Source: Pavona decussata (lineage: Eukaryota). From it: DNA of 64,000 nucleotides. A program made the translations under genes and the position numbers. The first letter of the stretch is position 1. Every line of letters starts with the position of its first letter. The DNA lies in contig CDRNST010000070.1 of the NCBI GenBank assembly GCA_977016875.1, forward strand, positions 496,001 to 560,000. The letters run 5' to 3'. Shown in pieces: positions 29,227 to 57,848 of this stretch. The notes beneath the pieces were generated by a model. It did not search any database and was not told the DNA's origin. It worked only from the letters and a program-made list of their open reading frames with translations.

Positions 29227-29653
29227 AATGGCGGAAAGCTACACAACAAAACCTGCAAACACAATCGCAAAACAGCACAGGTTACAATCCGCATCTCCAG
29301 TAGCCCCGCCAAATTCCAAAGTAAACAATAAGAGCTTCAATTACCTGAAAAAGAGTTTCCTTTCTTTGCAATTTGCAGGAAAATTTGATTCTAACGTTGA
29401 CACTACGAAACGTGCACGCTGTCCGCCATGTTGTTACGTCACGGCCCTGCAAAAACTGAAAAGCGCTCCCGCAGATTGGTTTGAAGGCGAGGCTCGAAGC
29501 GGGAGAATATCCCACAATCCAACACGGGATAATCTCGACACTGGCGCATGCTCTTTATCCGTGTGTTCTTCACCGACGTGGCGTTTGGACAAAGGATTTC
29601 ATGTGGAGAGTTCACCGGTTGAAAACAGCTTTATCCAGCCTTTAGGGACAATT
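29227..29653. promoter_or_regulatory. Bidirectional promoter PRPF8/TMED2
   Basis: 427 bp between divergent ATGs; CpG-richer than flanking introns. YY1-like ccgccatgtt (29423-29432), CRE-like ttacgtca (29434-29441), CCAAT (gattgg 29474-29479), ZNF143-like tcccacaatcc (29510-29520), NRF1-like gcgcatgctc (29544-29553), UPRE-like gacgtgg (29575-29581). Possible PRPF8 5'UTR intron (donor 29344, acceptor 29239 or 29253). Motif assignments are by eye. Confidence 0.7.
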
Positions 29654-32497
29654 ATGGCTTCTTTTCGTTTAGAATTGTGTTCAATATTATTTGTACTCCT
29701 CTTTGAGGTCTCATTTGGCTATTTTATAACGATCGACGCACATGCAGAAGAATGCTTTCACGACCAAGTTACATCTGGAACCAAGATGGGTCTCATATTT
29801 GAAGTAGCGGAAGGTGGCTTCTTGGACATCGATGTTACGGTAAATAACACATTTCGAGAATCCAAGGGTTCCAGTATTAAATATAGTTTAGATATAACTG
29901 CTCAATAACCTCGGCGAATCTTAACAATCAATTTACCTGTATAGGCTCAAATCAAGATAAAATTTTTATCATGTGCAGCCTGTGTCATAGTTTCTCCAAA
30001 AAAACAAAAACGTTTGTCGTGTTACTGTTTCAATTTCCATTGATAGAGATTTTCAGAATGTCGCTGACATTTTCAGTAATAAACTAAGCTTATTTTGTTG
30101 AAATGTAGGCTACAGTGTTTAATTCATACATGTACCTACTGCAGTTAAGAAGCTTAACGTGTCTTTTAAGTGACTTCCAGTGAAAAGATGTGCCATTTAA
30201 ATTTTACCCACCCACCCCCCTCCCCCCCCTCTCTTCTCTTTGATAAACCTCTGGGCCTGGTTGTCTAAGCCAATTAATGCTAATTCCCGATTAAAAATTA
30301 TGCAAGGTTTTCATCTCGTTTATGAAAAATGTTTTTAAAAGCTAATTTCAAGCTTAAGGTAAAGAAAAGTCTAAATCAAAATTGACCAACAACAATATTT
30401 TCGAAGACTCTCTATTGATTAATCTTGAATCAAAGTTCAAGTTAACCCAGGATTAGCTTAATCAGGCTTTGAACAACTATGCCCTGTTCCCTTTATATAT
30501 GGTATCTAAACCTTTTTGCATAATTGCAAACACATTGATAAGACACCCTCCATGGTATCGATGCTCCATATACTACAGACACCACATAAAATACAGAGAA
30601 CAGTTTACCTAATGCCATAAAAGATGTGAAGTAAACGGACGTCTTCATTTGAAGAAATCACAGAATGAGGTTTCTTGTTGGGCAAAATAGAGTGACAGTA
30701 ATAACTTAACAGGTGGTCGTAAACTAGGGTTCCAGTGTACATGCAGTTCTCTAATGGGAATGAGATCTAGAGGGAGGATGCTGGTCATCCGAGAAACACA
30801 TCCCAACTGTGGATATAAAAATCTATTTTTCCTTTCTTACATTGGTGACCATTTACATGAATAATGAGAAAATTTATATTTGAAAATTCAGATATATTCA
30901 TCATTCTTTTAGAAAACTTGCAAATCAATGCAGGTATGCGGCTAAGAAAAAGCTCAGCAGGCAAATTTAATTAAACCCCGCTGGCTCTTTTGAACTGTGC
31001 ATGTTTAAAATTAGCCTGAAGTACTGGTGTTCTGTTAAAATTTCAGACTTTGAAATTCGTCAGTAGCTGGGCCTTAGAAACATCCCTATCAATGTGGGCT
31101 ACCATACACATTATTATGGTCCACATTCCTCTTCCTATTTGATTTTTAGTCGTATTTTTTTACAAAGTTTATTTTATGATGTCAAGATGTATGCAGAATG
31201 TTAATATAATTTGCACCTTTTCCTTTTCGTATGTCAGATAAGAGGTCCAGATCAAAAAGTTATTTACACAGGAGAAAGGGAGACCAATGGAAAGTATGCA
31301 TTTGCAGCATACATGGATGGGACATACCATTACTGTTTTAGCAACAAAATGTCCTCCATGACACCCAAAATAGTCAAGTTCTCAATGGACCTGGGAGAGC
31401 CACCTAAAGACACCAGTAAAGAGGAAGGTGAGAGGCATTAGTAGACAGAGAGACAGAAAAACTGATTCTTCAAAGTCCTCAAAATGGAACATTCTGAGAG
31501 TAGTGTGTGCCATTTTGAAGCAATTAAAAAAAAAGTGGCGCACAAACTGTCGTTTAAATTGGTGCATTCCGTTTGCAAAATATTGAACTGGTCAGCCAGT
31601 TCTGACAAGTGGAAGGTGCCCAAGGCACATTCAGTTATAATGGGTAATGTTAGTTGTTACTGGTTATGACTTTTAATGACAATCCTGACCCTGCTATTTT
31701 GCAACTACAAGAGCTGTCACAGAACAGGGTAACAATTTTATTTTCTGTTTTTATTAGGTGCCCATCATGATAAGTTAAGTGAGATGATTGGTCAACTATC
31801 TGAGGCAATGACAGGAGTCAAACACGAGCAAGAATACATGGAAGTTAGAGAACGAATCCACAGAGCAAGTGAGTAAAAAACATTCCCTTTCAGTAAAAAA
31901 TGTTGTCATGGGTAGTTTTAAAGTAGCTTCCCTCATACATCTAATCTTTATCATTGTCCCATATGATTGGTCATACCACATTAACTTTTCATAGTTTTCT
32001 GTGTAAAATATTATTAATAGTAAGCACCCTTGAATTTCAGTTATCTGAAACAAATAATTGTTTTCTTCAATGTTAAAAGGAACAGAATTCTACAGTTTTA
32101 ATTACTATTTTGTATTTACATGTACATGTATTTTCTCACTTGTTGCCCATACTGCAAATATTTAGTTTTTGATGGGACTTTATGTTCCTTGAAAAACTGT
32201 GATTGCATCTTGCATTCACACATTAAGTTAATCTTTATTCATCTCCACGTCTCCACATAATGCAATAGAATTCGCACATAATTGGTTTTACTTTGCAAAC
32301 TTAATTATTCTTGCTGCTTCACTTGTAAAGAGTTTTTAGGTTTTAACAGTGTTTCTCTTTCTCACTCTACAGTCAATGACAATACAAACAGCCGTGTAGT
32401 CTGGTGGTCCTTCTTTGAATCCCTTGTACTTGTTGCCATGACACTAGGACAAGTTTTCTACCTTAAACGATTCTTTGAAGTCAGAAGAGTGGTATAA
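29654..32497 (+). CDS. TMED2: Transmembrane emp24 domain protein 2 (p24 beta), 4 exons (29654-29839, 31238-31427, 31758-31868, 32373-32497), 203 aa
   Basis: Signal peptide, then [13 protein letters not shown]...[20 protein letters not shown] (GOLD domain), coiled coil [18 protein letters not shown] segment and diagnostic tail [12 protein letters not shown]; GT-AG introns with consistent phases. Confidence 0.96.
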
Positions 32498-40420: not shown

Positions 40421-43400
40421 TCCCCATGTCTTGATTTTTGTTTCTTAAGTCCTCTACATAATGCAAGTCGTCTTTGAACCTATTTTAACATTTAAAGTTC
40501 CCAACTCAGAGTCAAAATTCTCCCTGGATTTTATTAATTATCTCACAAATTTGATTTTCGGTTAAAATGTTTGCCTCACGCTTCAGGTAGTAAAAAAGTG
40601 AGAGAAAGGAGAGATTGATCTCTGTTCATTAGTATAAACCTAAAAGAAAATTACCCTAAACCTATCGTATCTTAAATCAAATTCGCACACTAAATGATAT
40701 AAATAATTATTTTTGTTGAGTACCTTGAGTATGACAGTTTTTCACTGGCTCTGGCAATTATGAGCGTGCTACTTCTTTTCCCTTTGCCACAAAACGATTG
40801 AAATTATTGCCAAAGCTCCATGCAGAGAATAACCTAGTTTGTTTCAGCTTATCAAGTCATCTACCAGATATGTAATTACTGTGATTGCTGGTTGCGTATT
40901 TTTCTTTTGTGCATGGCTCTATTAATCGCCTTAGGAAATTGTTTCGATTGCAACCTTAGGGCCGCAGCTTGGCACAGTCTGTGTGTTATACTTAAGTTTT
41001 TCACACTCCAGTGAAGAGGTGCTCTACAAGGACTCAGTTAAAAAGATAAGTATTAAATATTGAACAATTTTACTAAGTACAATTATGCAAGACAATTGTT
41101 ACTTTATGAGGAAACAAGAACAGCGTCTGGCCCATCATCCTGATCTTGTGTTATGCCTTCGTTTGAGCTGACAGAGCTTCGCATCTGGTGAACCCGGCCG
41201 ACGATTCTTCCATAGAATTTTCAAAGTCCCCTGGGTCATAGCTGCATATAATGGTAAATTTAAGAATTAGCCTGCAAGCTGGGATTTGTTTTGAATATAG
41301 TTTGAGAGAAAGTCCATCGCAAACAATCATAGTTGGTATAAACCGAGAGAAAAACGTCTACTGTACATAGCAACACCGAAGGCCTCATACCTGTGAACCA
41401 ATACCAGAGCAGCATTTTCCATGAATGCGGCGTTCGTTCTGTTAATTTGTACGTAGATAGTTCGTTGCTTGAAGTCATCCCTCCTCTCTCCCCTCAATTA
41501 CCATCTACAAATTTTGATAATGATGTTTAATGGCGCGTTGTTTGAAGACATTAACTACGAATATTGATAGAAAGGGAATTGAATAGCTCCATTACTGAGC
41601 AGCGAAAATTATCCACACCGTCAAAGTAAAAAGAAATTCGGAATATAAGAGTTAGGCTTATATTTGTGCAAGGGGTTTCTTGGAGCTTATTTTTCTTGGG
41701 GGATTACTTTCGTAAGGGATCAATAATTGCTGGAAGGACTTTTTATTCCAATATTGGTTGAGTTTGACAACAAAAACATGGGCGGCTTAAAACACTAAGC
41801 TAAGATCGTACAACAGCTACACTAGTACGTTGACGGTCCGCGAGGGTTTGCATGTTATCGAGAGGATACTGCGACCCGGGATTTGGTGGGCTTTTTTTGG
41901 GGGGGGAGGGGGGGGGATTATTTTAATTTTCAAATGGGTTTACGTACATATCAGTCTGGAATAAGTACCTTTGAGTCACTTCTGCTCTTGTTTAAGCAAC
42001 TACCATTGCGTCAACACAGCTGTCCTCGAGACGGAATCCGGCCTTTGTAAAGCTGTAACAACAACGATAATTGGTTAAGTTCTGACTTCTCCAACATGAA
42101 TTTAAGCTAGATAACTGATGCAACTGACATTAATCAAGGCCAACATAAGCAAAGGAATTATGTTGCGGAAACATCAGAAACAGCTTTGCTTTTTACCCGT
42201 TTTTGCCGTTTGTGGACGCAGACTCGGCAACGTTTACTGTGGATGTTTACTGAATTCTTTACACGAATCAAACAAATCCTTGTAGCCGTGGGTTACCGAG
42301 CTAGTAGACTATTGAAATTTTGGAATCACAAGAAAATATTTAAGTGAAAAAGGTAATACACTCGGACCTAACGCTAAACTATAACAGCTATCATGGCTAT
42401 CTTCCAGCAATAACTTATTTGATTCACGCAAGATTAGCAAAATATAGTTTTTTAGTGCCGGAAAAGGGGTGACATACAGTAAATACAACCCCATAAGTTT
42501 TTCTTTTTAACTTGATTGGCTGGGAAAAGCTGATTTTTGCTATAATTGGTTAGACACGCCACTACGTATTTTTTAACCAAAGCCCCAGCACTAGTCCACA
42601 CCGCGGGTTCCCGCGCGCCGTGCGTCTTGAATTTCGGTTCTGTAATTCGCATCTCCTCTTTACATTCATTTTGATTCTTAATTTCTACTTTAACAGATTT
42701 AAATTATAAGTATCATAATTTAGAAGTGAAGGGCCATTTAACTTAATGAGAAAAACGGAAATACCCAGTAATTTTGAGTCATGAGCGTTGATCACTTAGT
42801 TCCTTGAACAGAGGCCAACCTCAACAATCGCAAACAAAAGCGGATTAAAAACGTTTTAATCAGGGCTCTCATGACGTACCTATAAATTCGCATCTTGCGT
42901 CTTTCTAAAGCCCTTTTACTTGAATTTTAATACTTCACAGCGAGTGTAACTACGCTTTCGTCGTTGTTCACTATTTAATCGGTAGCTTGTTTATAACGTT
43001 GTATCAACTACTCTAAAAAATATCTCACCAGTTCTGGTTCTCAACAAATAATTTCCGATGCGCGCCTTTTTAAAAACTCTCATTTCAGTGTTGAAAATCC
43101 TTGGGAAACGCGCGATTCCTTTATGGCGCATGGATACGAGTTTGAGTCTTGAAATCAGTACAGTACCTGTGTTTCACTATCATATTGAGTGATTATCCTT
43201 TTATCATCCGAACTTGCTGTCCACAAACTGAAGGACTCTGGAGCTGGTCGTCCTCATTTCAGGCCGCGTTGAACTGTAAGAATAAAGTTACAGAGGCATC
43301 ATTATTCCTATCCTCAGTTGCTTTAGTTCTAACAAAACACTCTCACCTTTCCCGGATTTTAAAACGAGCATGCATTTCACTGATCATAACATGAGAAGGG

Positions 43401-45537
43401 TACAAACTTGGAAAGATCGCATCAATTTCATTTGAATTGAGGAGATTAAATACTAGCAAAATTGAAGAAGCGCATTTAAAATTCTTCTCCCCTCTGTGCC
43501 CAATTTCATAGATTCAGACAGTCGTCATATTACGTTTCAACCATTTGCAGATCAGGTAATGATAATTAAATGCAACAATGGGAATCTACTTTTACAAAGT
43601 GCCATGCATGTCAACCCTTCTTGGAATTGATGACCGCTGACTCGTACCTGTAATTAGTATGCATGGTTGCGAGTTTGAGTCACTCTTGTATCGAGGAATT
43701 ATCCTTTTAACATCCAAACTGGCTGTCCTTCAAGTGAAGCTTGTCGTCATTATCTGCGTCGAACTGTAAGAATAAAGTTTGTTGAGTCATTTTCAGTTAG
43801 TTGCTACAAAACTTCCCCTTCCAACTCCCTGGGGAAGGATGACTTGATGCAAAGCGGATTAGTTTTTTTAAGACGAACATTTTCCTAATCATAGCATGAA
43901 AAGAAAGTAAATTTCAAAAGATGGACGAATTTTATTTACACCGAGATCAAATGTTAGCGTTAAATGAAGCAGTGCGTTGACAAAAACCGTCAGTCTTACG
44001 CCGGTGCACAAATTTCATAGGTCCGCATAGTCCTCAATAACATTTCAAGCGTTTGTTCTAGATCAGGTAAAGGTAATGTAACAATTGGGTTCTCCCATGA
44101 AAAAATGTTATGCGATTTCAATTCTTTAGAGTTAATGTACCTGTGATTCCTATGTCGTCTTCGCTCATCCAGCCATCCTATGGTCTGATTCCTAAACAAG
44201 ACCTTTTGTACGGTAGGTAAGTGGAAGTTCAGGAACTGGAATATTCTTTGCTAGCTTCTGTTGCTTCTGTTCAATGTGTAGAACTTGGACTGCAAGCAAG
44301 AAAGTCAGTTGAACCCTCCTCTGTCTCCTTCTTCTTCAACAAAATGTAGACTCGCAACTTCTTTTCTTATCTGAACAATCATCTGCAACAATCCACTTGT
44401 GAATAAAACTGTTTACAAGATAAGGGGCAGCATATAAATGAAGTAAGATCATTGGCAATTAAGCACGGCCACAAATCAGTACAATTATTAAGCCTGCAAA
44501 AATTAATTTCATTAGTAATAATCAAAGATTACGAAGTGCGTTCGATGATCTCGATCCTAGGCTCTCTCACCTTTGCCAAAGTTGCTGATGATGACATCCT
44601 CCCCTGCAAAATCTGCGGTGGATACCAGATACGCGTTCCAAGATCCATTGATTCGTTGATTGTCCCATACAATCTCGACTCCAGACGAAATTAGGAGTGC
44701 GTTCTTTCTTCGACGAACGCAATTATCGCGCACGTGTCAGCTGCGCCGCGTACGTCCTCTCGCAATTGCAGGCGTTGCGCGGTTCACTCTCTCTCACACA
44801 CTCTCGCGCACTCACTCCACAGACACACACAACTACTGACACAAACAACAAGTATAACAAATACAACAAACACTACATATATGGGAGAGGAAGTAATTAG
44901 AATCTGAAGACGGTAGGATATAGTAGCGTAAGGCTCTAGCGTTTAGAAAGAACAGAATTGAGCCTTGCATGGGACATGGTGTATGAGGAGAGAAAATTGC
45001 CCTTAGGGACGTCAGTTAGAAATTAAGAGACAAGAGAGGATTCAGAGTCCACACGAAGATTAAAAAGGTACTCTAAAAGGTAATAAGAAAACTCAAAGTG
45101 AATGATACAAAATCATATTGCATGATAGAGGAGAGGAATGCTATTAAGTTGGAACTCTAAAAGGTACCATGTGGAGTATGAGTAAGCCCAAAGTGGTACA
45201 ATGTTGATTAAGCAGAGGGATTGTATTGTGTCCAGAACTACTGGAGACAGACGGTAGTGTCTTCTGGGATTCAACATTTTGAGCCAGCGCGACAGCCCGG
45301 CTTTGTTGTTGTTCTTGTCTTCGACGAAAACAACAACAAAGGCTGGGAAAAACAGAACAGTAATGTCCGCTATTGAAAGCAGGAACTTTCTCTGCACACG
45401 TTGCAACTATGTCGCTTCGATCTATGTAGTCTCCTGATCCATATGCGTCAATGAAGTAGAAACCGATATACATCTACGTACATTTGGAAGGCAATGTGGC
45501 TTTTTAAAGTCGCAGTCCATGACGCTTACAAGTATTT

Positions 45538-48530
45538 CAATAAGAAGAGCAAATACGACGAGAAGACCGAATGATGGTATAGCAAGATTGCAAAAGATGA
45601 TAACGACATTTCCGCGCGATTACCGGTTTGTCGATGGTTTGCATAACCGGAGTCGATGAGCATGCATTTGCCGTGTAGGGCATGATAAGGTATCGAAAAA
45701 GATCGCAAAAAACGATGGATGATGGACTGCAATAAACACAGTGCGCATTTATGTACAGTTTGTGGTACCAACATCGATTGCAGAAAACAATGGACGATGG
45801 ACAGCAATATTTTGAATACGGAGCGCATTTATGAACAGTTTGCGGCACCAACACCGATTGTACAAAGCAACGCGTGTAGATAGACCGCATAAGAGACTAT
45901 AAGATTGCAGAAGACGATGGATGATGGACTGCAATAAACACAGTGCGCATTTATGTACATTTTATGGTACCAACATCGATTGCAGAAATCAAGTAGAAGG
46001 ATCGCATAAGAGACTACAAGATGGCAGAAGACGATGGAAGATGGACAGCAATACTTTGAAGAAATACGGAGCGCATTTATGGACAATTTATGGCTTCAAC
46101 ATCGATTGTACGAAGCAACGCGTGTAGATAGATCGCATAAGAGACTATAAGATTGCAGAAGACGATGGATGATGGACAGCAATATTTTGAAGAAACACGG
46201 AGAGTATTTATATACAATTTATGGCTTTAACGTCGATTGTACGAAGCAACGCGTGTAGATAGATCGCATAAGAGACTATAAGATTGCAGAAGACGATGGA
46301 TGATGGACTGCAATATTTTGAAGAAATGCGGAGCGTACTTATGAACAGTTTACGGCACCAACATCGATTTAGCGAGGCAATGCGCGTAAGACAGGCGGCT
46401 TGTTTGCGAAAGATTACGGATACGAGTCTGCGTTGATAAGGCGGATATGGAAATGAACTGCGGTACAAAATAGCGAATTACAGGTCGTATAGGAAATTCC
46501 GTGGAAAAACGCGCAACCGCACCGCCTGCATAACGATGGCGTTAAGCTCCCAATTTTGTGTATAACTTACCCAAGGGAATAATAGAAATGTGACAGAGAA
46601 CAAAGCCGTTTACGGTTTACAGAAGATGATGATGCAGGTAGATGACCAGTGCGTGCGAAACGATGAGTGCCCACAGTTTTGAACAGATAGGCACCGAATT
46701 GGATTGCAAAAACGAAAATCATGCGTCTGGTCAGTTATAGGTTATATCGAAAACATCGAAAAACACGCAATTGTTTATTGCTTATAAGATATGTTGCATG
46801 CATGAAGAGTGAACAAGGCACGATGGAAAGGGTAGGTGGATCGAACTCCATAAGCGATGGAAGTTATACAGCCATTTTGCGAATAAACTGCAAATTTATA
46901 ACGGACGAATGCACGCGCGTCTGTGTGGATTTAGTTCCAAAATGATTTGCACAACTGAAAGCGGTAAAAGAATCACAGCTCGTGTAGATGTACATGAAAC
47001 AAACGCGCAACCGTCAACCGGCGTCTGTAGCATGCATAAGTTAACGCATGCAAGTAAATTGCGTACGAAACGTCTAATGGTATAGATGAGTAGATAAACT
47101 TGAATGTTGACGAGATTGAAAGCTCCGATTTGAAGCATGAGGTAGCAAAGACGATCGCAAAATTTGAGTGATTGATAGATTGTGAGTGTATAAGAGAAAA
47201 GCGTGAAGCATTTATGAGAGTGCTAACTTTCAGCATGGTCAGAACATCCATCACGTTACTTCTACTTGGTGCTCCGTGTTTTGAAAAAAATGTATTGGTT
47301 ACACGACGACGAAAAGGCACCAAACTAGGTTGCGCAATAAGAAGAGTGAATGCGGTGAGAAGACAATGGTGGTAAAAAGATTGCAAAAGATGGTAACGAC
47401 GGCTGCGCGCGGTTACCGGTATGTCGATGGTCTGCATAGCGAATTGATGAGCATGCATTTGCACACGGTACGGCATGATAAGGCATCGAAGACGATGGAT
47501 GATGGACAGCAATATTTTGAAGAAACACGGAGTGTATTTATGTACAATTTATGGCTTCAACATCGATTGTACGAAGCAACGGGTGTAGATAGATCGGATA
47601 AGAGACTATAAGATTGCAGAAGACGATGGATGATGGACCGTAATATTTTGAAGAAATACGGAGTGTACTTATGAACAGTTTACGGCACCAACATCGATTT
47701 CACGAGGCAATGCGCGTAAGAAAGGCGGCTTGTTTGCGAAAGATTACGGATACGAGTCTGCGTAGATAAGGCGGATATCGAAATGAACTGCGGTACAAAA
47801 TAGCGAATTACAGGTCGTATAGGAAATTCCGTGGAAAAAACGCGCAACCGCGCCGCCTGCATAACGATGACGTTAAGCTCCCAGTTTTGTGCATAACTTA
47901 CCCAAATTAAGGGAATAATGGAAATGTGACAGAGAACAAAGCCGTTTACGATTTACAGAAGATGATGATACAGGTAGCTGACCAGTGCGTGCGAAACGAT
48001 GAGTTCCCACAGTTTTGAACATATATAGGCACCGAATTGAGTTGCAAAAACGAAAATCATGCGTCTGGTCACTTACAGGTTATATTGAAAACATCGAAAA
48101 ACACGTTATTGTTTATTGCTTGCAAGATATGTTGCATGCATGATGAGTGAACAAGACAAAATGGATAGGGTAGGTGGATCGAACTCCATAAGCGATGGAA
48201 GTTAGGCAGCCATTTTGAGAATAAAAGACAAATCTATAACGGACGAATGCACGCGCATCTGTGCGGATTTAGTTCCAAAATGATTTGCACAACTGAAAGC
48301 GGTAAAAGAATCACAGTTCGTGTAGATGTGCATGAAACAAACGCGCAACCTGTCACTGAACCGTCTGTAGCCTGCAAAGTTAACGCATGCAAGTAAATTG
48401 CGTAGGAGACGTCTTATGATATAAATGAGTTGATAAACTTGAATGTTGACGAGATTGAAAGCCCTGATTTGGGGCATGAGGCAGCAAAGATGATCGAAAA
48501 ATTCGAGTTATTGATAGATTGCGAGTGTAT
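45538..48530 (+). repeat. Tandem duplication (copy A ~45538-47195, copy B ~47335-48530) containing a ~130-bp subrepeat array
   Basis: 46289-47195 aligns to 47619-48530 (offset ~1330); 45538-45720 aligns to 47335-47500. The gaagacgatggatgatggac...gagactataagattgca unit repeats ~6 times in copy A and 2 times in copy B. Confidence 0.9.
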
Positions 48531-48899
48531 ACGAAATGATGGCGAAACATCGAAGGAGAAATCGAAGATGATGATGACTGAGGTTGAATATGGGACGACA
48601 CAAACCTGCACAACGATTTCGAAATGAAGTAGTCGATGCCAATTTACTGTAGTCAGTATGTAGCTGAGGCGTTTGAAATCTGGACATTCCTAAGTATTCT
48701 TAAGACTGAGATGAAGCGTTGCTGATTGGTGGTTAACTTGGCTGAAAAGGATATTAGTAGCATGTCTGACGCAGCCAGGCAAGTGAGGTGCCAAGGGAAA
48801 AGGCAGTGAACTCCACCTAGGTTTCAGTTGCAGTTTGGTCCCATGAACCTTTGTGTTAGACATCTTGGAACTTGGAGATATCTAGTTTCTTGCAAGCTA

Positions 48900-50515
48900 C
48901 CTGTAACGAAATAGTTAGTACAAGGTGATGATGATGATGAAGAAGGGGATGGTGGGGCTGGGAGTGACGCTGAATTTGATGAATGGAAATAATTATGAGT
49001 TTTCAGTGGCAACAAAACGACTCAATTCATAGCTACTGAAAACAGAGTTGCAGAAGGCTGCAATTTACAGTCACTGAGGACTGCTAGGGAAAGGTTGTGA
49101 AAACACAAGCACTCAGCTCAAACCCCTTAGGAGTAGTTTAAACCAAACAAGGCAGGCGTTCAACCAAGAGGATGTCAGTGAAACGGGAACCAGTTACACC
49201 TTACACTGAAAACGTTTTGTTTCCTTTCAAGCTCGTAATAACGTCATTCACTCACCAGGTCATAAGAGTAACTCAGTGTAATGATTGTGAACTAGACATT
49301 GCACAGGAATAGGACTGTCATTCAAGTCTATGGCAGTGAAGAAAAGAAAGGATAAGAAGACAAGCGAATTCATTCCTGGCATTGATTAGTGGAAGATTTA
49401 AGCGGTGAGGTGAACAACTCTCAAGTGGGAGACCTGACATACAGCAGCACCTGACTCTCCAGGTCGTGGGGCTTTGTGACCGTATTTTCAGTCGACAGTA
49501 GAAGAGGATTGAGCTGAGTTAGAGCACTTACAGAACTTTGAAATCAAGCACTTCCGGTATCAAGAAGAAACGAATGTAATAAGCCCGTGTTAAGTAAGGG
49601 GCATTTCAGAAGTAAAGGATAAAAAAACACCCAAGTTCAAAGTAAGTTATAAGAGGATAGAGCAAGAAAGCTGTTGTCTTCCCGTTTTGGCAGTGCAGTA
49701 ATCTTAGAACTGAAGAAGGAACTTCAAGATGAACTTGAAAAAATAGAGCCAAAAACCAGCAAGGGCTGATAAGGAAACACTCTCAGGTCAGTTTGAATAT
49801 CTTGGCAACATCAGGAAAAATTTGCTTTTAGGCAAAGATCATTTTCCAGAAAGCAGTGAGAAGTTACACAACTTAACAAAGAAGATAAACAGGAGCATGA
49901 GCGGTAACAATTAAGAATCTGAGACAAGTCAGTTTTTAAGATGGAGCAGAGAAATTTAAAGGGGCACAGAAAGGTTGACCTTTAAAGCCAGATTGCCGGG
50001 GCCACAAAATTATCAAGATTAAACTCTCACGGAAAGAATACTGATGAGAGTAGGAGCAGCAAAGAAAACTTTTTCTTTAGGAAAAAAACGAAAACGGAAA
50101 TTCAATCGAACCATAGATAGACCAATTTACAAAGAAGTGAAGCATTTGGATCGGTGAAGACTTCAAGCCTTCACAGGCGCCATTGATAAAGCGTATACAC
50201 AGTGGAAGAAAGGGGTGAAATGGGAAGACAGTAAGATAAAGAAATAGAGAAGAAAAGGGACGAAAAGAAAGAGAAAAGGAAGGCGGGATGCTGTCAAAAA
50301 GCAAACCATTAAAGGTGGAAAAAAATCCATGAAAGGGCTCAAGGCGTGTAAAAGAAATCTAAGGTGGGTTTTGAAAAGGGTTTGACCAGGCAGCGTTTAG
50401 ACGTCGATGTAGCGACGAGCTGCAAAGTCTGAAGTGAAAAAGTTTATTGTAGACCACATGTGGCACCAGATCCACGTCACAGATGCAGAAGAGACCACAG
50501 CAAGTACAATCTGAA
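48900..50515 (+). pseudogene. Decayed long ORF of unknown family
   Basis: Purine-rich plus strand with long stretches readable as protein between scattered stops and frameshifts (e.g. AVILELKKELQDELEKIEPK, GKKRKRKFNRTIDRPIYKEVKHLDR*RLQAFTGAIDKAYTQWKKGVKWED). No recognisable domain. Confidence 0.4.
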
Positions 50516-50770
50516 GTATGCATGAATACATCCGGTGAAGAATTCCCTTCCTTTTTAGCTTGTTTCTTCTCTCTTTCTCCCAGGTCAGTTAATATGTTTG
50601 TCGGTCTTCTGTTCTTCTGGAATTCTTCACACCTTCACAACTCTTTTGAAGGCCTTTGCTTCTTTCCTTGTGGTCTTGTGCTACAGCTTCCATGCAGGTT
50701 CGTCTTGTCACGGCAAAGTGGTCTTTATAAATTATTACTGTTTATTTTCCTAAGTAACTACTCACTAAAA

Positions 50771-53075
50771 GAGTACGCGACCAGTCCATGGGACGCAAGG
50801 TGTCGCATGAACCCCCGCACCACTCTGTTTAATAATAAATATAAAATTAAAAATAAACTAAGATTGAATCTCTGGTGTTCCCTGCGTTTGAGTCCAGGCG
50901 TTTCTTCTCCTGAATCTTCTCACGAGGACGGCTCCTTTAGATTTTCTTTGCTTCCAACGTTCTTCTTGAGTCTTCCTGAAATTGTCTTGGTTTCCATGGC
51001 TTGCCTTCCACTTCCACGTACAGCTTTTATTTGCCAGGATTCTTCTTGATCTACAATGAATCTTTTCTACATGAGGTGCAACCTGAGTGCGCGGCCGACC
51101 CATGGGATTCATGATATCCCATGAATCCCCGCTCCACCAGTCTTACTTAACTTAGAATTATATTGATTGTTGTGGCAAATAACAAATATTTCTAAAGTCC
51201 TCTTTTTCTTTCTGTCAACACTTCTTGCTTTGTCGTATCCTTCCTTGTTGCCTTTACCGATCTTTTCTGCCAGTGTTTCACTCTTCCCTAGTGTTGTCCG
51301 CGTCCACAGATGCGACGACTTTTTTGGTCTTCTGTGCACAGCTTCCAGTGTCACCTTCTTGCTGATATTTCTTGATCTTGGTTTCTGATCCATTTTTAGA
51401 GCCTGAGTACCACATTAAACAATCAATAAAAGGCAAACAGTGCGCGACCAGCCCATGGAACGAAAAAAATTCCATGAGCCCCCGCACCACTGTTGCAAAA
51501 TCTTAACACGGAAACTGACTGTCTTTAAAGTTAAACTTGTGAATTCCAGGACAAGCTGTTTGGCTTCTTCAGACTCTCTTGCTCTTCTTTTACCTTCCGA
51601 AATTTCTTCTTATTGTCGTAGGCGTTCCTATCCTTCTTCTAGTTTGTGTTTCTCTTAGTCTTGCTATTTCATGTTTTCTTGGGTGTCGTTTTTGCCCCAT
51701 CCCAGACTTCGCTGATGTCGCTGCTAAAGTGGACCGTCCAGACGGAAAAAATCCGAGAATACGTATTAAGGGGTTTGTCAAAAGTTGTCACTAGAGAGAA
51801 GGGTGGTAGAGAGAGATTTGGCACAGAGGCAAGGATCCACCACTTTGCCAGCCTCACCAAAATAAGAAAGCAACAAAGAATTCCTTGAGCCACCGTTCTA
51901 CTTAGTAAACGTAGTTAAAGCCAACATAATTTTCACCGCACCTACAGCTCCGTGTCCTCCACTTCTTCTCCGCTCTGATCTTCAATTTACGATCATTCGC
52001 TGTTTTCAGTGCTTTCGTAATGTTGACATTATTCTTCTTGAGTTGCTTTGAATTTTTTACCAAGGCTTTGACTTTTCCACTGCGGTTTTCCTCGTCATGC
52101 TTTCTTCCTTCATCTTCCGAACATTCTTGCTCAGTCGACTCCGTATCTTTTTTGTCAAGTAGAATCACAGAAAACATCGAGTTACACGAGAGTGTACCAG
52201 TAGCAAAGACAACAGAAACTCCTTGAACCCTTCAGAGCAAACAGACCAATAGTTAGGTGAACAGAGCAAAAAGAAAAAGTAGCCAGAGGAACTAAGCTAG
52301 AAAAGGCAACAGTTCCTTGACTCCCTCTTCGTCCTCTTTCTTCTTCTTCCTTCCTTCTTTATCTTCCTCTTCTNNNNNNNNNNNNNNNNNNNNNNNNNNN
52401 NNNNNNNNNNNNNNNNNNNNNNNNNNNNNNNNNNNNNNNNNNNNNNNNNNNNNNNNNNNNNNNNNNNNNNNNNNNNNNNNNNNNNNNNNNNNNNNNNNNN
52501 NNNNNNNNNNNNNNNNNNNNNNNNNNNNNNNNNNNNNNNNNNNNNNNNNNNNNNNNNNNNNNNNNNNNNNNNNNNNNNNNNNNNNNNNNNNNNNNNNNNN
52601 NNNNNNNNNNNNNNNNNNNNNNNNCGTCCTCGTCCTCGTCTTCGTCTTCGTCTTCGTCTTCGTCTTCGTCTTCGTCTTCTTCTTCTTCTTCTTCTTCTTC
52701 TTCTTCTTCTTCTTCTTCTTCTTCTTCTTCTCAGTTGTTGTTGTTGTTCCTTTCTCTCTTCGTCTTTCCCTTCAGAGTACTCTCTGCAGTTCTCTGATTT
52801 TGTTCATCGCACTATGGTTTGGTGGCTATTTGATCGAAGTTCTTTCTTGCTCCTGAGTCTTGTAACCTTTTGTCGAGCTGATCTAACTTAATAAATACGC
52901 GCGGCCAGCTTACTGGATGCTAGTCATCCCAAGAAATTGCACACCACAAAAAACATATGAAAATGTTCCTTAAAACAGTATTGCATTCTTAAAGTATTAA
53001 CTTATGTTAAACGTTATGTTAACATATACGCGACCAGCCCATGTGATGTCTAACATCACATGAACTCCCGCGTCT
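50771..53075 (-). other. Five copies of an unrecognised conserved ~50-nt hairpin motif (50771-50825, 51083-51140, 51439-51491, 52898-52947 degenerate, 53025-53075)
   Basis: Minus-strand consensus GUGCGGGRGUU-CAUG-N15-CAUG-GGCUGGUCGCGY, with a self-complementary variable N15 and compensatory changes in the lower stem. Confidence 0.85.
52320..52750. repeat. (TTC)n/(GTCTTC)n/(GTCCTC)n microsatellite spanning an assembly gap (N at 52374-52624)
   Basis: Directly visible; the minus strand would read as poly-Glu/(Glu-Asp)n in one frame. Confidence 0.9.
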
Positions 53076-56000
53076 AATCTATTGATTAATGTTAATGATC
53101 GTTTGCGTTTATTGCTATTCTAGCTACCCTGTTCCACCCCAAAGTAACCCAACTACCCACCCCAGGGGAGAAGAAAAGTATTAAGCAACCTCTGCTACGA
53201 TATTAACACTGGACCAACAAAAACACGTAGGCTATGCTCTTACATGGTAAAATTGTTTAGCTGAGACATAAGTGAAATGAATCATCGGAAGAAAGCTATG
53301 AGCCTACAGTAATAGGAAAGCTATGAGCCTATACAGTAACAGGAAAACTATGAGCCTACAGAAACAGATCGAACGCTTTGTCTTCACAATAGAAAAAGCG
53401 ACGAAAATCAATCGTGGAAAAAAAGTCGCCATTAAAATGCATCACAAGACTGCAGAACTGGACACGAATGATGAGCTACAAGAGCCTAAACTACAAGCCT
53501 AAAGTAACGGATCGAAATTCTGTGGCAAAGCTACTTCGAGGAAAAAAGCGAATTGAAAAACCAATCGCGGGAGAAAATGTCGCTATAGAAGAGGAAACAC
53601 CTACAACACCGGACGTAAACGGAATTTCCGCGTTAAAACTGATTGTTCAAAAGATAACGAAGCTAATCGAGATAATCACTTCGTGGAAAAAATTCGTCGA
53701 GCCCTTAAACTGCGCATCGCAGTCATTGGCAGTGGTGCATGAATGTCGAAGTGAATTCGATCTCATGGCGAGCCATAAACTGCGCATCGCAGTCGCTGAC
53801 AGTGGTGCATGAATGTCGAAGTAAATTCGACCTCATGCTAATGTGGTGAATAATGCTTAAACGCTGGAGAGTAAAAAGAATACAACACTTACCGCAGATT
53901 TAAGGTATATCTCACGAAACACTATCAAACTGAAGCTACCTTAAAGTTGAAAAGTGCCTCGTGAAAGACACCTTCACTTAAAGTATAGAATTAGTCTTAA
54001 GCCCATTTATATCCCAACACCTGGCACTCAAATCAGTTGGGCAGTGTACCAATTGGCTTGAAGTGCCCAGTGAAAAGCGTTTAAGCATATACAATCTGAA
54101 TGGACTCAGGTTGGCTCGCCCCAGTTGCAGAGAGAATTCTGCTACTGAGCTGAGCCAAATGACACAAGGAGAAGTCGGAAAAAATCTTCGACGATCGAAT
54201 AAGCGGTAAAGCAGATAACGAAAGAGGCACGAAAACAAAAAGACTCGATTGAAAAGCCATTCAAGTCGAAATGCCAGTCTCTTAAAAAGCGAAAAAAGTC
54301 GAAATCCGCAAAGGTAATCATTCGAGATACCAATCAACCAAAATATGCCAATTAAATGTCAGTATCCCTCAAAAATGTCAACCAAGCCAAAAAGCGAAAC
54401 AACCCAATTGCGAATCATGCGGACGGTTCATAAAGATAAAAAGTCGAAGTAGTTGAAGAGCAGGACCATTTGTCGCACAGCCAGTAACTGAAGAACAAAA
54501 AAAAGAGCCGGAAAAAAGACTGTGCATAAAGATACCCATAAAAGATCGAAGACGATGGACAACGTCGCAAACAAGCGCTGGGTTCCATTCAGACCAAACT
54601 TAATTACCCCCCTTAACTAACCCGTCCCCAGTAAAACAAATCTGAAAAGGGTACGATACCAAGACCATAAAAGGTCTCGACGGACTTGTCGTGCTGCTTG
54701 TAGTTTCCATTTATGCACGAGATAGTTCATTTATGTCCACAGAGAAGTTGTACCGGTTTGTAGAAGTTGTGTAGGTTGTCCATGGCGGGAACCAAAGTAT
54801 GTGAAGAAGAATCAATTATTTTCCTGAAAACAAAACAAAAGAGGAGCTTAGATACACGACTGTTTGAATGAATTTCAAAAATAGTACTGAGTTTGTTTAG
54901 AGAATAATGAAGCGCCTTAAAGTTCGGTGCAAAAAATGTTTCCTGAAATTCAAATAAATTCGAGTGATTAAATATCATGATCATTATGTTTGAACAGTGG
55001 GTGAAGAATTTCTGTAGAAGACTACCTAAGTTATGTGCGGAACTAAAGCGCGCAGTTGCGAAAAGAAAACCTTAAAAAACAAAATAAAAACAATTCAGCG
55101 CGCGAGTTCCTCGAAAGGGTTCTAACCCTCCCAAGACTGAAATTTTTTTAGATTTTCGTTTCACAACTGCTCAAGTTGCGAAATAACTGTGATGGTGTTC
55201 CATGTATTATCCACGTGTTAAAAAACACATAAATAAATTGAGCTAGACTCCAAATCCTTTATAGAATATAATTAGGTAGTGAGCCCAGAGGTACAGAACC
55301 TTTTACAACCAAAAATCAGTCCAAGACACTTTCATGCTCAGAAAATCAAACAAATTTAAATTTGAAATTAAAAGTGAATTTTAGGAAATTTAGGATTTGT
55401 CTGATTTTATCGCCTTTGTATTCTACCAAAGAAAAAAATGACCAATACCTCATTGTAAGAAGAGGACATACGTATTTTGTTTGAACAAAAATTGAGTGAA
55501 CAGGAAAGGAAAATAATGAAACAACAGCCATAACATATTTTCACCCAGAGCTGTTTTTCTCAATGTTTATAACACGAGAATTAATTTTTTCAGTAAAATT
55601 GAGTTTCCACATGTTTGCGAGATCACATTTTTTGTCAAAAGCAGGATGTTTTAAAATTTGAACACAAGTTTTAGAAAAAAAAAGAGAATACAACTTTTAA
55701 AAAGATTTATAGGTGTGAAATTTAACCATTGATTCCTTCAAGCGTGTTTATGTGAAAAAAAAAAAAAAAAAAAAACTTGAAGCGTTTCTGCGAATAAAAA
55801 TCCCGCGAAATTTAAAAGAAACATGTTTGTCGCCTTGAATGGAAACTTGCTATTAGTTGTTCAAAGTCAAGTCCTTCTGACAAAACAGCATAATTTGGCT
55901 TAAAAAAAAATAATAATAAAATAAAAACAAACAAACAAGCAACAAAGTGTTTTCGAAGAGTATTTTAACTCTATAATCAATGTTATGTTTCGCAGTGTAA

Positions 56001-57848
56001 ATATTTTGTTTGTCTCGTGAATGAAACTTTGAAAAGCTTTCGCGCTGTTTCAACTAAACGCACAAACTTAAGTTTAAAGCAAATTTTCGCAATTTAAGGC
56101 CAAAACTATAAAAAGTTGTTGTCAAACTCAGTTTGCCATGAATTTTCCCGCGCCGAGTGTCCACGCGTAAAGTTGCTGTCTTCTTCAAAAAACATTTTGC
56201 GTCGTTTTGCAACTTTTAACGCTTTAAACGTAGCGTTGGAGGTTGGAGCTTCCTTCCTGGTCATGTAAAATGCTGAGAAAAATTTAACTAAAGCAAATTT
56301 GAGACATGTACTAACTTTAAAAACACACTGAAACTTTGCAAACGCCAGCATGTGTATTGAATATGCAAACTGTTTCTTGATAATTTCTTACCTTGCAATG
56401 CCAAAAAAGACTCCAAAGTTTACTTTCCGTCTTCTCCTTGTTCAGCGCACTGCTCATATATGGTTCTTGGTGAAATTTTCGTTACAGCTAAGAAATAATT
56501 AGCTTAAAACTCGGAGAAGAAAATAAAACTTCACTCGGCGCTTGCTTATCAGAAGTGTGAACAAACTGCATGGAACAACGTGAAAAATTTGAAAAGGGCG
56601 CGAATTTGCGTGACGGCTACCAGAATGAAGCTCATTCTTTCTTCTGATTGGCTGGCTGAAGAAAAATTTGGCGAAAGCAAACCCTATTGGCTGAATGGTG
56701 ACACCTATCATTCATCAGAGGATTCAAAGCCACGTGGGAAATGCAACTTGTTAGCACGCATTATTGATAATCGGAATATTAAATTGGAACAAACAAATTT
56801 TCTTGGAGCAATTGAACAATGACGATGGAAATTAAACGCTTCGCTATTGTGAAATATTGTAAATTTTTCCAGCTCGAAGCCTTACCGTAGTATTTTATCA
56901 CTTTCATGATGAAGCAAACAATGAACACAGCTGGGGTCACATGACCTGATACTCACTTTTAAATTAAAGGGTTTATATGGAAAGAGGTATTGGAGACAAA
57001 GGTTAAGGTCTTCGGCAAATGTTTCATACAAATCCTTTAATGTTTTAAAACATTCAAATCATCTTTATAACTCACTTAACATCAGCAACCTCAAACATGG
57101 CAATTTTGCAACTTTTAACATGCCTTTATCATTTCTAATATTCTTTGATTTAGCTGTAAAGTGGGTCATGTGATACCTTAGCTGAACAGTCGTCTGCACC
57201 TTGCTACAGGTGTCTGTGTTGTGGTTTAAATTTTTTGGTTTAAAATATTTCAAACCAGTTTAATTTTTTATTTTCCTTTGTGCAGGATTCATTACCATAA
57301 TCAGAGACAATGGGAAAGAAAAATCATGAAACTGGTTTGAAACTTTTTGAATCAAAAAAAATTTGAACCACAACATCTACATTATTGTGATCTGGTATGA
57401 AAATAACTCAGAACATGAAAACAGGAGTGGTGTTTTCCATTTATTTCTTAAAACAGAAACAGCTTGACACTGCCACTCAGTTTGTGGAATGGAAGAAAAA
57501 ATAAAAACATGTAGCTTTAGAGGAATATCTACAGCTTCAGTTAACAATATGATGGCAAGTTCAAGGTCTATATAAGCTGATAGTTGGAGAGGGCAACGGC
57601 TGAGCTAATCGTCAAAGTCCATAGAAACTGAGAGTGTGCCATCTAAAATTGTTTTGTAAATAACTCAGTGACTGGTCTATTCAAAGAAATTGGCTAGAAG
57701 TCATTTATTTCTCTCTATTGAGTTCAGCAAATTTCCTTGCAAACATTCCCAGGCAGTCTATCAAAAATAAGGCCACACTTGCATGACAAATCAGACCTAG
57801 AGTTTGTCCAATGTTGATCACTGGGTCAAGTTAACAACAAATAATAGC

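Follow-up and report, generated by a model that had tools for sequence, protein, structure and literature searches.

A repeated, strand-specific hairpin in noncoding units of the stony coral Pavona decussata

What kind of element is a short hairpin that recurs along one strand of a coral genome while the sequence at its tip differs from copy to copy? The question is raised by a 64,000-nt stretch of Pavona decussata DNA (GenBank assembly GCA_977016875.1, contig CDRNST010000070.1, forward-strand positions 496,001 to 560,000), hereafter the window, to which all coordinates below refer unless another locus is named. An earlier description made from the letters of the window (the sequence-only reading) had noted four intact copies and one decayed copy of a minus-strand hairpin, and reading the sequence again confirms all five. 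The pattern CATG-N15-CATG occurs seven times in the window against 1.12 expected, a count that none of 100 shuffles reached, and the matches at 50787, 51101, 51454 and 53040, all within 2.3 kb, are the four intact hairpins. Their flanking consensus on the plus strand is GCGRCCRRYCCATG-N15-CATGARYYCCCGC; on the minus strand the motif reads GUGGUGCGGGGGYUCAUG-loop-CAUGGRYYGGYCGCGYAC. The five copies, with scores from a covariance model (R1) built from 39 genomic copies and with predicted folding energies, are as follows.

50777-50818 (core; 50763-50832 with lower stem), minus strand: hairpin A, copy 1; R1 76.2 bits, -30.4 kcal/mol
51091-51132 (core; 51077-51146 extended), minus strand: hairpin B, copy 2; 72.1 bits, -34.5 kcal/mol
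51444-51485 (core; 51430-51499 extended), minus strand: hairpin C, copy 3; 79.4 bits, -36.8 kcal/mol, z -5.4, stem of about 26 bp
52898-52947, minus strand: decayed hairpin E, copy 4; homologue of an intact hairpin of CTTG/CCAG type in a second family
53030-53071 (core; 53016-53085 extended), minus strand: hairpin D, copy 5; 70.4 bits, -32 kcal/mol, z -6.3

Directly below the CATG box, the four intact types differ from one another in sequence while remaining paired, as the first four pairs of each stem illustrate.

Type A, pairs 1-4: U.G, U-A, G-C, G.U
Type B, pairs 1-4: U.G, U.G, A-U, G-C
Type C, pairs 1-4: U.G, C-G, G-C, G.U
Type D, pairs 1-4: U.G, U.G, G-C, A-U

The pairs that the sequence-only reading listed for copies 1, 2, 3 and 5 agree with the sequence; among them is the A-U / G-C swap, at pairs 3 and 4 of the stem, that sets hairpin B apart from types A, C and D. 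Beneath these pairs all types have a G / GG internal loop, followed by a GCGG/YCGC helix. The core stem comprises 18 pairs; extensions lengthen it to 24-29 bp in types A, B, C and E, whereas type D has about 20 bp. Below the conserved part the stem runs on to about 26-29 bp in types A, B and C, and the lower extensions are wholly different between types and yet keep their pairing (AGAGU/ACUCU, CAACAGU/ACUGUUUG, AAAUUC/GAAUUU). The extended types (A, B, C and E) each carry one small internal loop and one bulge per stem. Two constancies asserted by the sequence-only reading do not survive comparison with other copies: the spacing is not fixed at 23 nt, as paralogs have N10, N13 or N19 between the CATG boxes, and the boxes themselves are not invariant, as hairpins of type E have CTTG/CCAG (CUUG/CCAG in the RNA) where the others have CATG/CATG.

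The preference of the fold for the minus strand, by contrast, was rightly seen, and is borne out both by folding energies and by the ratio of G.U to A.C pairs given below. When 90-nt segments are folded as RNA, the minus strand gives -30.4 to -36.8 kcal/mol (z -2.7 to -6.3) and the plus strand of the same segments -20.9 to -27.9 kcal/mol, so that the minus strand is the more stable by 7-13 kcal/mol. Further copies, too, are plentiful. The exact hairpin pattern is matched at 38 places in the 602-Mb genome, a reversed control at none, and the covariance model, with 150 candidates scored, recovers at least 64 hairpins.

Does this recurrent fold reflect selection, or only the duplication of a palindrome? 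Pairing was assessed on an alignment of 65 distinct hairpins (unless stated otherwise, the scope of the figures that follow) and in an earlier version on 39 sequences. Of all paired cells, 87.2% are complementary. Shuffles give 80.1%, with none of 500 attaining the value observed, and slid partners give 32-40%; both versions of the alignment together span 87-89% paired, 80-82% shuffled and 32-45% slid. Changes on both sides are found at 12 of 24 pairs, and the covariation noticed among the window's own copies thus holds in the larger alignment. The 18 core pairs sum to 818 Watson-Crick pairs, 278 G.U and 18 A.C, with 46 mismatches of other kinds. Were the hairpins a DNA palindrome in decay, G.U and A.C would be equally frequent on a given strand; the ratio of 15:1 therefore identifies the minus strand as the one that folds. 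Two wobble pairs stay wobble in 59 of the 65 hairpins, and there is little or no variation in the G / GG loop and the GCGG/YCGC helix.

Rates of change point the same way. Between copies of the first family of repeated units described below, hairpin cores diverge by 0.095 per site as compared with 0.226 in the rest of the unit, a 2.4-fold slower change. Within hairpin types, paired positions show 66 pair-keeping changes and 35 pair-breaking ones, about twice the pair-keeping share expected from single substitutions; in type E the CATG box itself has changed in a compensatory manner, from A-U to U.G. The loop of type D (UUAGA) is kept across both families of units and in another coral taxon while its stem covaries. 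Because the slow change is seen in each dispersed copy, selection acts on the genomic copies themselves and not on a past master element. Taken together (0.095 against 0.226, 278:18, 66 against 35), these figures support the earlier suggestion of selection on a single-stranded fold, and we conclude from sequence comparison that the hairpins are such a fold, selected on the minus strand. In the lower stem, it should be noted, conservation extends to the sequence and is not confined to the fold.

The hairpins lie within a much larger repeated unit. The features of this unit on which the argument depends are listed here.

about 49030-56870 (about 7.8 kb), minus strand: family-1 unit, from blastn against eight paralogous loci at 67-82% identity
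51147-51499 (C), 50833-51146 (B) and 50440-50832 (A), minus strand: three tandem subrepeats of 310-390 nt, aligned at 58% mean column identity
50443-50448, minus strand: AATAAA, about 330 nt after hairpin A and at the end of the last subrepeat, read from the sequence
52320-52745, no strand assigned: TTC/GTC trinucleotide repeat (GAA/GAC on the minus strand), containing an assembly gap at 52374-52624
54584-54687, minus strand (that of the hairpins): 104-nt block, 1.5-1.8 kb upstream of hairpin D

Thirteen copies of the family-1 unit occur in the genome; six of these follow one another in tandem with a period of 6.2 kb. The five copies first described are thus indeed present as one array, but that array sits inside a unit that is itself repeated, 13 times in this family and 6 times in a second. 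Across both families there are about 19 units, with two to five hairpins each, and all hairpins of a unit lie on one strand with their types in a fixed order. Hairpin A occupies the same position in every family-1 unit, and the decay of copy 4 is identical in all family-1 paralogs. Nor are the surroundings of the hairpins barely alignable, as had been thought: hairpins A, B and C belong to diverged tandem subrepeats, each of which starts with its hairpin and has the hairpin as its best-kept part, followed by spacers that are purine-rich on the minus strand. The AATAAA at the end of the last subrepeat, which is AATAAA or AGTAAA in paralogous loci L033 and L036, may be a polyadenylation signal.

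The assembly gap calls for some care. In each of the eight paralogous loci that were compared, the sequences on either side of it keep their order and strand and are separated by a simple repeat whose length differs between loci (about 105 nt in L033); the nhmmer alignment to the second family likewise crosses the gap. Order and orientation across 52374-52624 are therefore supported, while these comparisons do not give the length. Reading frames are unaffected by the gap, because no open reading frame (ORF) of the unit is conserved.

The second family, found through lower-scoring matches of the covariance model at loci L039-L043, consists of 3.6-kb tandem units, at least five to six in number. 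Its hairpins come in pairs about 110 nt apart, one of type D and one of type E, so that it keeps only the two older hairpins. It is colinear with the window from 54696 to 52277 by nhmmer, from which it follows that the pair corresponds to copy 5 and the decayed copy 4. Evidence from beyond this genome consists of two overlapping contigs (L046/L047), found in a scan of public metagenome contigs, that carry the D and E pair; they match this genome at only 66-71% and hence come from another coral taxon. In these contigs the D stem has a U-A to G-C swap with its loop kept, the order of hairpins and 104-nt block is the same, and in L047 a purine-rich simple repeat follows hairpin E, as it does in the window. 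Hairpin D has the lowest divergence of the four intact hairpins (0.040 per site); it is the oldest type, common to the second family and the other taxon, with homologues in L039-L042 and L046/L047.

Hairpins apart, the 104-nt block is the sole part common to both families and contig L046. It has exactly 19 copies in the genome, all of them in these units, and 18 of the 19 have a hairpin D 1.5-1.8 kb downstream on their own strand. Its divergence of 0.072 per site makes it the slowest-changing part of the unit. The block folds no better than shuffles (z about 0), which argues that it is kept for its sequence, and it has no match in Rfam. It contains CCTTTTATGG and TAATTAAG, with a perfect 6-bp inverted repeat around CCTTTTATGG (CArG-like); both resemble binding sites of MADS-box and homeodomain factors. 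The block may accordingly be viewed as a candidate promoter-proximal or regulatory element. A role as telomerase template, considered for its GGGTTAG, was rejected, the match being only 7 nt long and the block present in 19 copies. As a separate observation, the block's 10-mer TCCATTCAGA (about 54588-54600, plus strand) recurs inverted about 480 nt away, at about 54100-54110 on the minus strand, within another well-conserved stretch (54050-54150); the two copies could be paired sites of one factor or could take part in long-range pairing. Between block and hairpin D the unit also holds two short tandem arrays, at 53291-53367 (25-27 nt, three times) and 53698-53837 (70 nt, twice), the latter among the better-conserved parts of the unit.

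Is the unit coding? The sequence-only reading had proposed small ORFs between the hairpins, and the minus strand of the window does hold ORFs of 94, 84 and 25 aa there, rich in lysine and arginine. They are not kept between paralogs: the 94-aa ORF is 15-51 aa long in other copies, where 1-nt indels shift the frame. Across nine paralogous loci no copy has an ORF of at least 130 aa with real content, no Pfam domain is found in ten ORFs of the unit, and substitutions between paralogs have no codon periodicity, with indels frequent. A 188-aa ORF over hairpin A matches only itself among 5.8 billion proteins, and exact look-up of the window's ORFs gives matches only in assemblies of this genome. By all these comparisons the repeated unit is noncoding. 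In such a unit the proposal that the hairpins are punctuation—terminators, 3'-end signals or translational signals set between small lysine/arginine-rich ORFs—loses the ORFs that had motivated it; with no codon periodicity, no Pfam domain and no homologues but the window's own, it seems largely refuted and most improbable.

There are also indications from RNA. Two coral metatranscriptome runs yield short contigs over 50429-50690, 50767-50995, 51144-51446 and 52222-52373, and summed contig depth, expressed relative to the run that holds the locus, amounts to about 0.3-1.1 over 50336-51503 as compared with 0-0.3 on most flanks. This suggests that the hairpin family is present in RNA. Introns deduced from joints between RNA contigs were rejected, the joints having no GT-AG ends and reflecting differences between paralogs; splice sites at the hairpin flanks (AG before, GT after) were rejected as not conserved between paralogs, and a mirtron was rejected for want of an AG at the hairpin 3' end. 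Scans of the unit for bacterial-type promoters and terminators were uninformative here.

Our preferred explanation, which we hold tentatively and at somewhat less than even confidence, is that the hairpins are RNA-level recognition modules, on which protein would dock along a noncoding minus-strand RNA of the coral lineage. Transcription of each unit would give a minus-strand RNA that starts somewhere between the 104-nt block and hairpin D, extends to the AATAAA at 50448-50443, and folds into two to five stem-loops, each 46-70 nt long. Such a stem-loop would have the GCGG/YCGC helix at its base, above it the invariant G / GG internal loop bracketed by wobble pairs, then a YUCAUG/CAUGGR helix, and at the tip an apical helix and loop that are free to vary. 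The surface that is read would be the conserved lower half, and its reader most likely an RNA-binding protein; by docking on several hairpins along the same transcript, this protein would form a multivalent ribonucleoprotein. In the main variant of this scheme an RNase III-type enzyme would cut the same hairpins. The conserved lower half, free apex, two to five copies per noncoding unit and linked upstream block are together best accommodated by recognition modules. Several observations nevertheless weigh against this explanation. The loops of types A, B and C vary freely, indels included, so that only the lower stem can be a shared binding surface. The minus strand is pyrimidine-rich between block and hairpin D, and the transcript may thus start nearer the hairpins, or the stretch may be an intron. 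Dispersed copies of the unit end alike on the right, near 56870, which would also fit a mobile element. As for the RNA, the contigs are mostly 90-95% alike and so derive from paralogs or a related coral; they carry neither strand nor transcript ends, and carry-over of DNA is possible. As compared with stem-loop modules of long noncoding RNAs, then, multiple hairpin copies and a noncoding host are both seen, and the indication of transcription comes from contigs that carry no strand.

If the hairpins are cut rather than bound, they could be clustered small-RNA precursors, excised from a polycistronic transcript by RNase III (Drosha and Dicer, or Dicer only) into microRNA (miRNA)-like or short-hairpin-derived small RNAs, and expanded in tandem. 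We regard this as possible but rather unlikely. It is consistent with two to five same-strand hairpins in a noncoding unit with a downstream AATAAA—a clustering of miRNA type—as well as with the 24-29 bp that types A, B, C and E reach through their lower extensions, and with arms both conserved around loops that are free in three types. Canonical Microprocessor substrates, however, have stems of about 33-35 bp. The stems here are shorter, only about 20 bp in type D, and do not provide the 22-nt duplex plus lower stem of about 11 bp, or about three helical turns, of a canonical miRNA precursor. Guide/star asymmetry is likewise missing: the two arms do not differ in how well they are kept, variation falls in the same paired columns of each, and a seed in the conserved part would differ between types, whose first bases there are GGUGCGG, GGAGCGG and GACGCGG. 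No slicing-type target is seen within one mismatch of either 18-nt arm elsewhere in the genome, and no matching sequence occurs in the literature searched or in the Stylophora miRNA supplements. The last of these results has limited force, as the Stylophora study discarded reads that mapped more than five times (PMC3962355). Such a filter would remove a family with at least 13 copies, and absence from coral miRNA lists is therefore no evidence against small-RNA precursors.

The remaining explanations place the selected fold in DNA or in an element that moves, or dispense with selection. The common right-hand end of dispersed copies, the tandem arrays and the internal short repeats (25-27 nt x3 and 70 nt x2) would all suit a cis-element of a non-autonomous mobile element, whether a relative of tyrosine-recombinase retroelements or a rolling-circle element, for which the hairpins would serve in packaging, priming or single-stranded DNA recombination or termination. 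At least 100 matches to PF00589 (phage integrase, tyrosine recombinase), many with open frames of about 400-450 aa, represent an abundant population of tyrosine-recombinase elements in this genome, but none of them lies at a hairpin locus. Only 19 units exist, at 67-85% identity, with no autonomous copy, no transposase-type gene close by, no long ORF, no CTRR-type end after the hairpins and no terminal repeat seen; and whereas dead copies of a mobile element would lose their hairpins as fast as neutral sequence changes, here the hairpins are kept in every copy. Low copy number, the lack of a coding copy and selection on each copy argue against a mobile element, which we consider unlikely. We give still less weight to the idea that the minus DNA strand carries a single-stranded signal for nicking, recombination or replication, like an attC site or a HUH origin. 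DNA, too, would accommodate G.T wobble, and the asymmetry between strands is consistent with any form that is single-stranded; against this, no HUH, Rep or integrase gene is found in or near any unit, the loops have no conserved nick motif and differ between and vary within types, a viral contig collection has no match to the hairpin pattern, and RNA contigs cover the region.

Two further readings are comparably improbable, namely that local template switching gave rise to the hairpins as neutral palindromes, and that the tandem units are retrozyme-like and contain a new self-cleaving ribozyme. Template switching, named in the sequence-only reading as an origin that would undo its case, has one event in its favour, the inverted loop of a type D hairpin in L034. 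It fails on the one-strand wobble in 59 of 65 hairpins, on the slower change of each copy and on conservation in another taxon, and is contradicted by the rates and pair counts given above. For a ribozyme, subrepeats of about 330 nt with one structured motif each recall tandem ribozyme units; no ribozyme family matches, however, even at expectation values up to 10, and we know of no catalytic core in a plain hairpin with a 1x2 loop. The inverted loop (L034:8321-8390, G000:C214) reads GUCUAAC where all other copies have GUUAGAC, with the stem unchanged. It records a palindrome-mediated DNA event that has occurred at least once and does not explain the overall pattern.

Known systems offer partial parallels to the recognition modules that we favour and to their alternatives. 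The Xist A-repeat and the roX-box stem-loops of Drosophila also present several copies of one short hairpin along a noncoding transcript, with conserved stems and free spacers, an arrangement suggestive of a multivalent platform for protein. Neither resembles the coral hairpins in sequence, and here the spacers measure 110-350 nt and the host unit is itself multi-copy (19). Zebrafish mir-430 and primate C19MC share same-strand hairpins regularly spaced in repeated noncoding units, conservation of both arms, and expansion by tandem duplication; their stems are about 33-35 bp, whereas those described here are 18-29 bp, lack guide/star asymmetry and have no targets found. Stem IIB of the HIV-1 Rev response element and the 7SK 5' hairpin (with its repeated GAUC) resemble the present motif in an invariant, purine-only, asymmetric internal loop that has non-canonical pairs on its flanks within an otherwise regular helix, and in a short palindromic box nearby, here CAUG/CAUG. 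The loop geometry here is 1x2 and all G, however, no arginine-rich partner gene lies nearby, and the lysine/arginine-rich ORFs are not conserved. Helitron 3' hairpins and integron attC sites similarly keep a strand-specific structure while the apical sequence varies. Here, in contrast, there is no Rep/helicase or integrase gene, no extrahelical-base pattern and no CTRR end—the sequences after the hairpins differ between types and have no CTRR at the distance of about 10-12 nt typical of Helitrons—and copy number is low, with selection on every copy. The hammerhead retrozyme-type repeats of cnidarians and other invertebrates are also tandem units of a few hundred nt with one structured motif each, but no hammerhead or other ribozyme core is seen here, and arrays comprise only three to five units.

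How far, then, is the hairpin new? The claim that it matches no described family is borne out against Rfam 15, which gives no match over the whole window at gathering thresholds and, at expectation values up to 10 over 50300-53500, three weak matches of which none lies on a hairpin. The arm sequences returned nothing relevant in the literature searched, and within one mismatch the 18-nt arms occur elsewhere in the genome only at hairpin loci and at one lone site. This site (G000:C215:344947-344964) matches the 5' arm with one mismatch, lies outside the known units and may be due to chance. Judged against Rfam, the searched literature and one coral miRNA supplement, the hairpin is a new and well-supported structured motif, of a kind that is known in general, namely repeated hairpins in noncoding transcripts. 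The broader proposition is one on which we are evenly divided: that the units make up an undescribed stony-coral noncoding RNA gene family with its own upstream block, and that the G / GG-loop hairpins represent either a new RNA-protein module or a source of non-canonical, short-hairpin-derived small RNAs.

Apart from those that are universal and a small number of miRNAs, few structured noncoding RNAs are known in cnidarians. The hairpin is a concrete candidate for addition to Rfam as a new family, and may also serve as a test case for long noncoding RNA scaffolds or non-canonical small RNAs in corals. If small RNAs are indeed made from it, standard miRNA pipelines would drop them, each arm mapping to more than five places; multi-copy hairpin families can stay hidden from coral small-RNA catalogues by such multi-mapping filters.

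The remainder of the window provides the setting of the unit. At its left edge lies a GAT/GGT trinucleotide repeat (48876-49021) with a summed contig depth of 4917 in the run that holds the locus, a value that marks it as a common simple repeat. Farther left, 41261-49000 is common only to paralogous loci L034, L035 and L037; it is purine-rich on the plus strand, holds a 131-nt tandem repeat in three copies (45993-46388) and an 80-nt repeat in two (45701-45860), and may be a convergent second noncoding unit. Host genes occupy the earlier part of the window, with PRP8 exons at about 3100-26500 on the minus strand (PROCT, PRP8 domain IV, U6-snRNA-binding and PROCN domains), followed by a gene with a p24/GOLD domain at 29228-29905 on the plus strand, an ordinary host context.

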